The notes under the pieces: generated by a model | Databases searched by the model: none | Told to the model about the DNA's origin: nothing | What the model saw: the letters and a program-made list of their open reading frames with translations, nothing else | Assembly (NCBI GenBank): GCA_021613535.1 | Contig: CP075492.1 | Span: 7,812,001 to 7,876,000 of the forward strand | From: Adineta vaga | Lineage: Eukaryota; Animalia; Rotifera | Reading direction: 5' to 3' | DNA: 64,000 nt | Shown: one piece after another, positions 6,265-11,741 of the stretch | Layout: each line of letters opens with the position of its first letter | Numbering within the stretch: position 1 is the first letter of the stretch | Made by a program: the position numbers and the translations under genes

Positions 6265-8384
6265 ATGTATACTCGTCTTATCGTTAATTCTCGTTTGCAA
6301 CTATCATTATTAGTTCAACATATCAAAACTTTCTCTACAAAAACAACAACAACAGACATTCTTAAACCTTACCCGAGTTATACTGAACGTCAAATTACTC
6401 TTAGTATTAATACATCATCAGGTGATGATTTCGTTGAAATTGATCGTGAAACGAAAATTAAAGTTGTTAAACCAACAACACATATTCGTCCAACTATAAA
6501 TTATGTTGATACAAATCCATTAGGTGATAAAAATCAACCAATTGTTTTACTTGTACATGGTTATCCTGGTGCACATGAATCAACAAAAAATCTTATTGAA
6601 GAATTTCAACGAAGAAATTTTCGTTGCATTGCACCTGATATGCCTTGTTAGTTGATTCGATTTCAATTTCATTTAGATTCTTTGTTTATTTAGATTGTGG
6701 TAAAACCAAAATGCCGTTATGGAGTTCATTAGTTTGGAAAAATTCCGTTTATTTACGAGCGAGATTTCTTGGAGAATTACTTAAAAGTATAATGGGAAAT
6801 AAACTAATGTAGGTGAAATGATTTGAAAACGTTTTCGGTCTTTTTTTATTTATTTGAAGATTTCTTTCTCTTTTATTAAAGACCACTTCATGCTGTCATT
6901 GGTTTTCATGAAAATGCATATACATTAATGTCATTGATTGATCAATATGAATACTTTCGTTGTCAATCATTAGTTTTAATCAATCCAGTATCAAGAAAAC
7001 TGCTTCGGTAAGGAAAATGTACTGATTGTGAATGAAATCAACGATTTTGTTTTTATTCAAAGATTTCTTCCATTATCAAAAATGGCATTTGATTTCGGTA
7101 GACTTCCTCTTCATTGGCCCGTAGCAAAATTTCTTTTGAAAACTCTTGGCTATAAGGAATTATTGAAATATTCTCAACAGGAAATCATGGGTGCATTACG
7201 TATTTGGATGCTTGAAGATAAATATGAAGTAAAGTATTGATTTTATTTTCGAAAAAATGAACAAACTTATATTTTTGCTACTTTTTAATTAACAGTATGA
7301 TGCATACATTCACAATTTATGGATCTCTCGATTACGAACAATGGTGATTGTATCTGAAGAAGATAAATTCTTGGATAGAAAATTATTAAATGCATTAATT
7401 ACAGATTTAGCTGTGGAACCTTTCAATAAATGTAGGTGAGACAAAAAGAAATTGCAAATAATATAACAATGTATAGACTACATACTGACAATAGTCATGA
7501 GTGAAACCTTGAAACATCGATTTAATTGATAGATGCACATCTATTATTTATTCAGACAATGAAAGATACTTAATGAAACCTTAATTTTTTGAATGTGGAA
7601 TTCTTTTTTTTGATGAGTAAATTAGATTATCATTTTTTCCATTAATTACTATTCAATAATGAAATCAAGTTTGTTCGACCAAGAAACATCGTACATCATT
7701 TAATTTAAAGAAAAAAACTAGGAACATTCAGTGCTAAGGTACTATGGAGTCATTTGTGATGGGTTAATGCGACATAAAACTAATAGATCTACATCAATCT
7801 GTTGCTTTTCCCTAAATTTCAGCATTGATTCATTGTTTTTTTCTTCTCTTTTGTATTCTAGTCAATATGGCTAATGCAGTGATTAAAAAATATGCTTGTA
7901 CTCAGGATGAATTACTAACTGATCGCGTCAGTTTTGTTGCTGATGATATCGAAACGTTTGTTTCTTTAGCGCTTAAATCACCAGCTGCGACCATGTTCGT
8001 ATTTATAAGATTTCTTTCTTTTTCTTTATTCTTTCTACGTTTTCTTTCAATTTCATTAGAACACAATCATACGCATCGACAATAGCAAAAGAAAAGGGAA
8101 GGAAAACGCCTATCCAGACATCCGACAACGAACAAGTAAAATCGAATATTGAATTAGATGAAAATGCGTATAGACGCGCTGCGGCAAATGACTTTTTCTC
8201 CAATGCATTTGGTCCAAGTCAATCCGAATTAAAACCAAATCAACCACATAGTATACGTTCGACATTCGAAACTATTGCTGGTGGATTTATTGAAAAACGC
8301 AAAGCTGATACACCGCGAGAAACATTAGCAACGATAAAAGAAGAAATGAGAAAGAAAAAAATTCGCATTGAGACGAAAAATTGA
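6265..8384 (+). CDS. Alpha/beta hydrolase-fold protein, probably catalytically inactive, 7 exons
   Basis: VLLVHGYPG oxyanion motif, FRCIAPDMP and LVLINP strand. The nucleophile elbow reads GFHEN. The N-terminus is rich in R/K/S/T (mitochondrial-presequence-like). Exons join in frame to the stop at 8382-8384. Confidence 0.8.
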
Positions 8385-8529
8385 ATTCACATATATCTAT
8401 ATATGCAAATAAATGAACGTGAGATTGATGATTTGTTTTAACTATAAGTGTTTATATTGACACTAATCATGTAGATTTGTATGACAAAAGGTCATTTCAG
8501 ATTAAACATGTTCATTTGTTTTGTTTCAG

Positions 8530-11500
8530 ATGTTCTCATCACATCTCTATTGGTTTTTGTATCGTCGTCGAAACAAATTTATCATTCTTCTGATTATTAT
8601 ATTTTGTATATTATTTTATTTTCACACAACTGATCGTCAAAACAAATCATCCGAAGTTGAAAAAAGAACAAGTGTAGTAAACAAAGCGCATAATGGAAAA
8701 AAGATACGTATCAATCGAGATATTTACACAATACCTGAACCGTGTCATGGTTGTCCAGGTGAAAATGGTCAAGGCGTACAATTATCAGTAATGATTAGAG
8801 TAGAAAGATTGATCTATTTATTTATTGAAATCAAATTTTTAGGCAGCAGAATCAGTTAATTTAGATGCGGTTATAAAAAAAGAATTCTTTAATTTACGTG
8901 CAAGTGACAAAATTTCACTTTGGAGATCAATACCAGATACTCGTGATTCGTTGTATGTGAAATCTGTTTTATAGGAGACTATTTTCCATGAATATATCTT
9001 TGTCTATAGATGCAAAGCGATAGAATATCCGAAAGATTTACCAACAGCATCAGTTGTAATAGTATTTAAAAATGAACGTTGGTCACCAGTACTTCGAACA
9101 GTTTATTCTGTCTTGAATCGTTCACCAAAACATTTGCTCAAAGAAGTTATTCTCGTTGATGATCAATCGGATATTGGTGAGAGAAAAGAAAAAGTTATAT
9201 TTTGAAGAAAAGAAAAAACGAAGATAATTATTCTAGAGGAAATGGGTCAACGTCTAGACGATTATTGTGAAGAGAATTTTGGTGATCTAGTACGAATTTT
9301 ACGAGCACCAATGCGACTTGGATTAATTAAAGCGAAAAATTATGGCGCAAAAAATGGTTAGTCATCTTAGTAGTGATCGAAAGTAGAAGATCAATTGATG
9401 AAATATTTTTGTTTTTAGCTACGGGAGATGTTGTGGTATTTCTTGATGCTCATTGTGAAGCTAATACCGGATGGTAAATATATCGAATCTTTTCCCTTAA
9501 GTATAAGACTCATAAGATCTAGGCTTGAACCATTAGTTTATCGTATTAAACAAAATCGGGCAGTTATACTTTGTCCTATCATTGATACAATCAATAGGTT
9601 TTCTTTAACATACCGTTCGGGTTGGACTAACTGGATTGGCATATTTACATGGTCACTTCATTTTTCTTGGTCGCCTGTTTTTTCAAGAATTCAAAATTCA
9701 CGAAAATCAATCATTGATCCTACTCCGTAGTTTACCTTAGCTTTTGTCTTCGAGTTATCTTTTTTTTTGCTTTGTTTCATTTTATTTTGGTGATTGGTCA
9801 TTTTGATTTGTATAGGCTAGAACCGATTTTGCTCCGAATTAAGCAGAAACGTTCAGCTATTCTTTGTCCGGGAATCGATATGATCAGTGATAGTAATATG
9901 GGTTATGGTGTAAGTAAACTTACATGTTTTGTTGAAGATATTATTTTGAGATTTTCTAAGGGTACGGGTGATGGAAGTGTTGGAGGATTTTGGTGGTCAT
10001 TACATTTTAATTGGATTCCAGTTCCACAACGTATTCGAGATGCACAAAAAACTCGAGTTGATCCTTATCCGTATGTGGTTTTGGTTACATTTCTATTTTG
10101 AAAAAAAAACAAACAAATGCAACAATATATAATTACTAACGAATGTCGATATTTTAGATCACCAACAATGGCAGGTGGTTTATTAGCTGCACATCGCGAA
10201 TACTTCTTTGAAATTGGTGGTTATGGTGAGTAGTTTGATAAGAGATGTTTCAGTATCTTTATTTCTTTTCTTGTATTCTCATTTAGATGACGATATGGAG
10301 GTAAGATTTGTTTATTTCATTCGAATATCTATGAAATTAGAGAGAAAAATAAGAATAATAAAACACATTTGTAAAATATCTTTTCTATTTTAGTCGATAT
10401 TGAATTATAAATTGTCATATTTTAACAGGTTTACTATGCATGTCTCATAGGTTTTTCGAAAATGTGTCGCGATTCAGCTATTGCATGAATATTTCGCACT
10501 CTCCGATTGGAGGATTTATCTTTGGATCACCAACATCAATCGTTCGATTGAAAAAACTAGACAGCTAGGACTGAGTATCATTGCATGTTTACGTTTGCTT
10601 GAGAAACATTTTCGAAAATGTTTCTCAAAATTATCAAATAAAATACACTCAGAAGATATTGCCCTTCTGATTTCATTTCATATAGAGCTAAGAGATGCGA
10701 CTTCTTACATTAACAATAGAATATCTTCTTCTTGCGCATATAATCGATTTATTTTTAGGTTTGGGGTGGTGAAAATCTTGAAATCTCATTTCGTGTATGG
10801 ATGTGTGGCGGTAGTTTAGAATTTGTGCCCTGTTCTCGTGTCGGTCATATATTCCGTCCAGGTCATCCTTATAACATGACTGGAGCTAAAGGTAATTGTT
10901 CAATTGGTTATTAAAGAAAACAATTGTTTTATTCTCGTATTGAAGGTAAAGGTGATGTTCATGGTCGAAATTCGATGCGACTTGCTGAAGTATGGATGGA
11001 TGATTATAAACGGTTCTATTATATGCATCGACATGATTTGATAGTAATCATTTATGATAGATGTCTGAGAGTTGTTTTCTCAAGAGAATATTTATGTTTC
11101 TATAGGGCAAAGATTATGGTGATGTAGAAGATCGTCGAGCAATACGAAAACGTTTAAATTGTAAATCATTCAAATGGTATTTGGAGAATGTTTTTCCGGA
11201 AAAATTTATTCTTGATGAAAATGTTCATGCCTTTGGTGAAGTAAATAAACAAATACAAAGAGAAACGAGAATTTAAAAGAAAACCTTTCTTGTTTTCTTT
11301 TAAGGTTCGAAATCCTTCATCAAGTTTATGTTTAGATACATTAGGTAAAGATGAAAAAAGTTCAATACAATTAGCAATATTTTCTTGTCAAAATGGAGCA
11401 TCTGCAAATCAATACTTTTCATTAACAAAAACTGATCAATTACGTCGTGAAGATACATGTGCAATTACGTCTGGACGTACTTCAGATTCTGTAGGCGTAG

Positions 11501-11741
11501 TTTTATCTCAATGTGATTATTCTGATAAAAATCAAAAATGGATCCATGAAAAAGTAATGTTTATTTGAAAGTTTTTTCATATTCTATATTATCATTTCAG
11601 AACGGAACAATTGTTCATCATCCAAGTGAACTCTGTCTAGATGTTGAAGGTCTTGCCAATAATGATCAACTTAAACTAAGAAAATGTCAACCAAATAAAC
11701 CATCACAACAATGGCTATTCGAACATTATTCAAATCCTTAG
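8530..11741 (+). CDS. GALNT: Polypeptide N-acetylgalactosaminyltransferase with ricin-type lectin domain
   Basis: N-terminal TM segment, [24 protein letters not shown] (DxH), [45 protein letters not shown] and C-terminal QxW ricin repeats. Confidence 0.96.

Follow-up and report, generated by a model that had tools for sequence, protein, structure and literature searches.

Two tandem versions of a catalytic-domain segment, probably used as alternatives, in a GalNAc-transferase gene of the bdelloid rotifer Adineta vaga

A GalNAc-Transferase Gene with a Duplicated Segment

The 64,000-nucleotide (nt) stretch of Adineta vaga DNA that we analyzed (assembly GCA_021613535.1, contig CP075492.1, positions 7,812,001 to 7,876,000 of the forward strand; hereafter the window, in whose numbering coordinates are given) contains a gene for a polypeptide N-acetylgalactosaminyltransferase (GalNAc-transferase; GALNT) in which 68 residues of the catalytic domain are encoded twice in tandem, once by an undivided exon, A, and once by a pair of exons, B1 and B2, which together make up cassette B (Table 1). 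Counted with one cassette, the gene has 13 coding exons and 583 codons; with both cassettes it has 651. The peptides of A and B are matched exactly in the public A. vaga protein UJR08957.1 (P0299), in which Pfam recognizes Glycos_transf_2 (PF00535, E 3.9e-32), Glyco_transf_7C (PF02709, E 1.4e-10) and, at the C-terminus, Ricin_B_lectin (PF00652, E 7.9e-25). The DxH metal-binding motif lies, as DAH, within the exon at 9419-9473 and the Gal/GalNAc-T motif, WGGENLE, within the exon at 10759-10891. By these domains and motifs the product is classed as a polypeptide GalNAc-transferase (CAZy family GT27) and is predicted to have transferase activity; the closest solved structures are those of GalNAc-T1 (1xhb, 8v9q). 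In what follows the exons of the gene were compared individually, statistics for B are the sum of B1 and B2, and full-length comparisons were made on public database proteins.

Table 1. The GALNT gene and the features around its duplicated cassette (window coordinates)
Feature	Position	Strand	Description
GALNT (polypeptide GalNAc-transferase) gene	8530..11741	+	Exon limits from sequence reading and tblastn with P0088
Constitutive exon E5	9419..9473	+	DAH (DxH) motif; last bases TG; donor GTAAAT
Intron E5-A	9474..9522	+	49 nt; purine/A-rich before the acceptor, weak pyrimidine tract; TCTAG/G (slash, exon start) conserved
Exon A	9523..9726	+	Unsplit 204-nt alternative cassette, G-I/V-F-T/S-W type; weak donor GTAGTT
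Intron A-B1	9727..9815	+	89 nt; in every species (69-92 nt) longer than the other three local introns
Conserved intronic element GGTGATTGG	9789..9797	+	Inside intron A-B1
Exon B1	9816..9909	+	94 nt; codons 1-31 of cassette B; strong pyrimidine tract; donor GTAAGT, nearly invariant
Intron within cassette B	9910..9960	+	51 nt; in phase 0, separating codon 31 from codon 32; common to both ohnologs
Exon B2	9961..10070	+	110 nt; final 36 codons of B, G-G-F-W-W type; last bases CC
Intron B2-E7	10071..10157	+	87 nt; TACTAAC-like branch site
Constitutive exon E7 (SPTMAGG...)	10158..10225	+	First base closes the Pro codon of A or B2

An initial sequence-only reading of the window had proposed that exon A and cassette B are paralogous, equal in length and alike in phase at both ends, and this is borne out by re-reading of the boundaries and by BLASTP, which aligns A with B1 at 53% identity (E 2e-11) and with B2 at 52% (E 5e-11). 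Exon A, bounded by AG at 9521-9522 and GT at 9727-9728, consists of one base, 67 stop-free codons and two bases; B1 and B2 likewise total 204 nt, and either cassette is entered and left after two bases of a codon. The same reading placed both cassettes between E5 and the SPTMAGG exon, where they indeed fit: the final TG of E5 is completed to a Trp codon by the first G of A or of B1, and the final CC of A or of B2 to a Pro codon by the base that opens the SPTMAGG exon. The SPTMAGG exon had been taken to begin at 10159 but begins one base earlier, its acceptor AG lying at 10156-10157.

The segment had also been assigned to the groove that holds the acceptor peptide. Agreeing with this, the match of GalNAc-T2 to exon A is ungapped, and the GalNAc-T2 groove residues V255, L270, F280, W282 and Y284 (PMC4432651) all map inside the cassette. 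A and B both retain the F280 and W282 equivalents. The V255 equivalent is T in A and M in B, the L270 equivalent is W in A and S in B, and the residues flanking W282 differ between the two; moreover, the GGF turn of the family is G-I/V/T-F in A across bdelloids (G-I-F in A. vaga). Given that A, like B, keeps the residues that a GT-A fold requires, together with both aromatic residues of the groove, and differs from B at other groove positions, we predict that the A form would be active and would have an altered preference for acceptor peptides, a changed preference being a reasonable inference from the substitutions.

Conservation and Origin of the Two Cassettes

A representative search with exon A returned open reading frames of 51-68% identity in metagenomes, and word, contig and pattern searches brought together 17 bdelloid loci beyond that of A. 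vaga, among them loci in assemblies of Rotaria sordida and Adineta ricciae and one on a contig of about 50% G+C. All 17 have the exons in the order E5, A (204 nt, flanked by AG and GT), B1 (94 nt), B2 (110 nt) and E7, with introns of 46-66 nt before A, 69-92 nt before B1 and 46-63 nt before B2 and a further intron before E7. No stop codon or indel was found in exon A in any of the 17, and its length stays fixed while the flanking introns vary by 20 nt or more. The exon is no relic, being open, 204 nt long and equipped with its splice sites throughout.

The pattern of substitution is that of protein-coding sequence. Mean pairwise synonymous differences are similar in the two cassettes (0.50 in A, 0.48 in B), and mean pairwise non-synonymous differences are 0.20 in A and 0.07 in B, giving ratios of non-synonymous to synonymous differences (pN/pS) of 0.40 and 0.14, respectively. 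The corresponding substitution-rate ratio (dN/dS) is below 1 for both; for exon A, for which this comparison across related species had been suggested, it is about 0.1-0.6. The amino-acid rate of A is three times that of B. Variability in A at codon positions 1, 2 and 3 is 0.25, 0.18 and 0.40. When neutral evolution was simulated in a simple way, with third positions diverging as observed, only 5-17% of lineages remained free of stops; chance falls far short of accounting for a 67-codon frame that, in AT-rich DNA, has stayed open in all related species examined. Purifying selection thus acts on exon A as a coding exon, though less tightly than on B.

The residues that are invariant in A are those conserved across the family (L-E-P, two Arg, C-P, I, Y, G, F, W-S-L-H-F and W). 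These are residues of the fold and of the groove, and their retention is expected only if A sometimes takes the canonical place in the enzyme. Ongoing gene conversion between A and B is ruled out, the fraction of identical A/B codons being 0.56 within species as compared with 0.52 between species. Both cassettes, then, have been kept by selection across bdelloids and hence are probably used as alternatives.

A collinear GALNT copy on chromosome 6, with exons 70-75% identical and flanking genes common to both loci, identifies the ohnolog of the gene. This copy contains B1 and B2, separated by the same intron, and at the place of exon A it has only a 62-nt intron, in which no remnant of A was found. 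In other A. vaga GALNT paralogs the segment is a single unsplit 204-nt exon. Because the unsplit form is present in these paralogs, in Brachionus and in molluscs, it is ancestral; and because both ohnologs carry the intron of B, the simpler reading is that this intron was gained before the bdelloid genome duplication. On this comparison the B intron is older than the duplication that gave chromosomes 3 and 6. As for exon A, either the chromosome 6 copy lost it or it was born, minus the intron, on the lineage of chromosome 3. The sequence-only reading had regarded a two-exon alternative as unusual and as implying intron loss or gain after the duplication. The arrangement is not unique, one cassette being split in the tardigrade Hypsibius also (see below), and of the two proposed histories, gain of an intron in B is the simpler.

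The Same Segment in Other Phyla

A profile search showed that the orthologous gene, named in RefSeq "probable N-acetylgalactosaminyltransferase 9" or "13-like," is annotated with pairs of isoforms (X1 and X2) in six molluscs and brachiopods: Mya, Argopecten, Biomphalaria, Physella, Littorina and Lingula. The members of each pair are identical outside the cassette and 49-62% identical within it. Third isoforms that contain both cassettes and are 64-70 residues longer are also listed. In the mRNA-derived contigs of mollusc-type orthologs that were read there is a single cassette, and both types are represented. In the genomes of Physella and Hypsibius the two cassettes stand in tandem, whereas Brachionus has one cassette with no adjoining introns.

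As in bdelloids, the mollusc, Lingula and Hypsibius cassettes are 67-68 residues long, occupy the interval between DxHCE...GW and SPTMAGG and comprise one member of the "GGFWW" (WW) type and one of the "F-T/S-W" (TW) type, about 50-60% identical to each other. They differ from the bdelloid pair in order, the WW type leading in these animals but following in bdelloids; in molluscs both cassettes are unsplit, whereas bdelloid B is split; and bdelloid A has another residue in place of the second Gly of GGF. In Hypsibius exemplaris the WW-type cassette is interrupted by an 81-nt intron after codon 34, in phase 1 (L062:2534-2818), and the TW-type cassette is unsplit. The position and phase both differ from those of the intron in bdelloid B; this is a second, independent case in which one of two alternatives has been split. 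In the best tree bdelloid A groups with bdelloid B (support 91/93), which suggests that the bdelloid pair arose by a duplication independent of those in other phyla. Orthology of A with the TW type is not favored by the tree, though a topology grouping the two is not rejected by the approximately unbiased test (p 0.365).

Arrays of more than two cassettes exist as well. Two to four tandem copies were found in open frames P0002, P0003 and P0040 and in loci L038-L040 and L042, with four in P0002.

Alternative exons in GalNAc-transferase genes are known from several animals. In Drosophila, pgant5A and pgant5B differ in alternative exons of the catalytic domain and in substrate preference, and are tissue specific and functionally non-equivalent (bioRxiv 10.64898/2025.12.22.695686). 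Like the A. vaga gene, this is a GalNAc-T1-like gene with alternative exons in the catalytic domain, but the pgant5 region (residues 398-457) takes in the catalytic flexible loop together with a helix-turn-helix, downstream of the Gal/GalNAc-T motif, whereas the bdelloid cassette lies upstream of it, between DxH and SPTMAGG. We considered whether the bdelloid cassette might be of the pgant5A/B type and rejected this, as it ends before SPTMAGG and upstream of WGGENLE. The homologous exons 8A and 8B of Drosophila pgant9A and pgant9B switch substrate specificity (PMC6115407); these encode the lectin domain's alpha repeat and act through the charge of a loop, unlike the bdelloid pair, which belongs to the catalytic groove. 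Substitutions of tandem duplicated exons have been cataloged for GALNT13, Pgant5 and gly-5 of the GalNAc-T1/13 family, as recurrent and convergent events among vertebrates, arthropods and nematodes (PMC9741552), but these lie in other regions of the gene (GALNT13 and Pgant5 being listed as "different region, convergent"), and the catalog does not cover rotifers or the bdelloid cassette. Cassette isoforms go unmentioned in a paper on the enzyme of Biomphalaria (PMC6994419), and our literature search found no paper describing such isoforms in molluscs or Lingula.

Choice between the Cassettes

How, then, are the two cassettes used? We favor, with somewhat more than even confidence, the view that the locus arose by tandem exon duplication and that A substitutes for the default version, B; replacement of B by A, as opposed to addition of A to B, is something we infer. 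The gene, which is GalNAc-T1/"GALNT9"-like, would thus offer two swappable versions of the 68-residue segment between DxH and SPTMAGG. B, with its strong splice signals, would be the apparent default, and A, with a weak acceptor tract and a weak donor, a regulated minor alternative. Across the loci the mean pyrimidine fraction before the acceptor of A is 0.40, as against 0.59-0.66 at B1, B2 and E7, and the donor of A invariably reads GTA and then G or C. In nearly all species the B1 donor is GTAAGT. Because this donor, the strongest of the region, belongs to the internal intron of B, that intron is presumably removed constitutively, and B1 and B2 would act as a single 204-nt exon.

Public gene models include several that contain B only, namely the A. 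steineri and R. sordida models of 582 residues and P0212 of A. ricciae, at whose locus an intact exon A is passed over. In R. sordida, the 582-residue P0226 and the 650-residue P0285 and P0279 lie on the same contigs, and the shorter product is not recorded as the longest of its gene; in the annotation a single gene seems to give rise to both the B-only and the A-plus-B product, as separate transcripts. Skipping of A is documented by L065, a metatranscriptome contig from an environmental Joint Genome Institute (JGI) sample that represents a fully spliced bdelloid mRNA and runs E4-E5-B1-B2-E7-E8-E9 and onward without A.

Several observations nevertheless weigh against mutually exclusive use. 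The public A. vaga model UJR08957.1 holds A and then B in tandem, as do the models of 650-651 residues from A. steineri and three Rotaria species. Representative, word, profile and region searches and cluster listings yielded no bdelloid transcript or protein that carries A by itself, an absence that is weak evidence, as the searches were bounded by length windows and word limits. L065 is itself an imperfect witness. It retains ATAG, the final four bases of the A-B1 intron, before B1 (L065:141-151), which create a TGA stop at the E5-B1 junction, and an AG four bases upstream of the B1 acceptor was found in none of the genomic loci. The contig shows that A can be skipped, though not a clean productive B form. 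Finally, the reading frame is preserved whether both cassettes are included or both are skipped, so that nonsense-mediated decay (NMD) cannot police exclusivity, and the A-B1 intron, at 69-92 nt, is not too short to be spliced where introns of 46 nt occur.

A rival reading, which we regard as unlikely, is that A, an in-frame cassette, never enters the mRNA unless B does too, the products being B alone and B with a 68-residue insertion after DxH. Every public bdelloid model that has A also has B, the A-B1 intron has a usable AG and GT and a spliceable length, the A-plus-B product is in frame, and the both-cassette X3 isoforms of molluscs have a place in RefSeq. The A-plus-B models, however, come from gene predictors, which join any in-frame exons, and the mRNA-derived contigs of mollusc-type orthologs that were read are all single-cassette. 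Furthermore, an insertion loop would not need to keep invariant the residues of the fold and the groove over 17 lineages. In an AlphaFold2 model of the A-plus-B protein, A (residues 201-270) is disordered, with a predicted local distance difference test score (pLDDT) of about 30, and B occupies the core with a pLDDT of 71-91; this lends weak support to the substitution of A for B, because the alignment placed single-cassette homologs on the B columns and so was biased toward B. The protein with a duplicated core that the A. vaga, A. steineri and Rotaria models describe probably does not exist as a main product.

It is also conceivable, but in our judgment improbable, that A is spliced in too rarely for a role in protein and is conserved for a function at the level of RNA or of regulation, for example as a decoy that tunes the output of B. 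The weakness of its acceptor tract and donor, its threefold higher amino-acid rate and the fact that no A-containing transcript was seen, the sole mRNA contig (L065) being unproductive and A-skipping, would all be in keeping with such a role. But the third codon position is the most variable, there is no indel in 204 nt and no stop in any lineage, and the conserved residues of A are the functional ones of the enzyme, which are signatures of a protein-coding exon and not of an RNA element. That A is a decaying pseudo-exon left open by chance after the duplication, as its absence from the ohnolog and its faster evolution relative to B might suggest, is scarcely credible, being contradicted by 17 of 17 loci with an open frame, exact length and splice sites at synonymous divergence up to saturation, an outcome whose chance, under a star tree, is less than 1e-10 and stays very small if fewer of the lineages are independent.

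The local introns are unalignable with the exception of the A-B1 intron, in which GGTGA, mostly as TGGTGAT(T/C)GG, is invariant in 13 of 13 aligned species, its distance upstream from the B1 acceptor being 27-46 nt; locus L066 of A. ricciae has it too. No element of this type occurs in any other intron of the region or in the matching intron of the chromosome 6 ohnolog, which is without exon A, and no analogous GGTGA was found between the cassettes of Physella, Hypsibius or the metagenome loci L038 and L042. We take this conserved element as a sign of regulated splicing; it may have a part in the choice between A and B.

The element resembles a 5' splice site (ATG/GTGAT, the slash marking the would-be cleavage site), and the 6-8 bases at the start of exon E7 are complementary to it. 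In a check for pairing of the docking/selector kind, the start of E7 was among the top three partners of the element in eight of 12 species. The pairing, however, spans only 6-8 base pairs, its target is fixed by coding and there is no covariation; the one informative change (in L023) breaks it.

Four mechanisms of exon exclusion are known: steric hindrance, spliceosome incompatibility, NMD and competing RNA structure. As enforcers here, steric hindrance and NMD are rejected on the grounds of intron length and reading frame given above, and U12/U2 incompatibility on the ground that all sites are GT-AG; the GGTGA element is a candidate for such a role. A speculative proposal, which we hold to be doubtful, is that GGTGA is a decoy 5' splice site through which inclusion of A entails skipping of B1 and B2 as one unit. 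The element would mimic the E5 donor but lie too near the B1 acceptor for splicing, and by occupying that acceptor it would link A inclusion to the skipping of B1 and B2. If true, the decoy would be an exclusion mechanism outside the four known ones, operating in a genome of short introns and intron definition.

We note some further features of the gene and its surroundings. Between the SPTMAGG and WGGENLE exons is a 14-nt exon at 10287-10300 (+), which codes for D-D-M-E plus split codons and is retained in bdelloid loci L022, L023 and L024 as well as in L065. The 458-nt intron that follows it (10301-10758) is several-fold longer than in related loci and has a perfect 30-nt palindrome at 10599-10628, detected as a minus-strand self-hit; this intron may contain an inserted element. 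Directly 5' of the GALNT gene, at about 6500-8385 (+), is an alpha/beta-hydrolase gene, for which no match was found upstream of the chromosome 6 GALNT copy. The A. ricciae and R. sordida public models P0212, P0273 and P0287 (1012-1097 residues) fuse the hydrolase with the GALNT protein. At its N-terminus UJR08957.1 differs from our reading (window 8486-8800) in being without the hydrophobic anchor encoded by the exon that starts at 8530, and it takes a donor 12 nt further downstream, adding V-M-I-R. Orthologous Rotaria models match the N-terminus as read here from 8530, and the public A. vaga model seems to be wrong at its N-terminus as well as in joining A to B.

GalNAc-transferase isoenzymes set which proteins receive mucin-type O-glycans, and the origin of their specificities is an open question. 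The work on pgant9 and pgant5 shows that a swap of one homologous exon can retune specificity in vivo. The bdelloid gene would be a case in which the swap takes place in the segment of the groove that carries the equivalents of F280 and W282, and in which it has been maintained across bdelloids. Duplication of this exon also in the orthologous gene of molluscs, of a brachiopod and of a tardigrade marks the segment as a preferred site of diversification by splicing, and the cassette pairs provide natural groove variants for enzymology.

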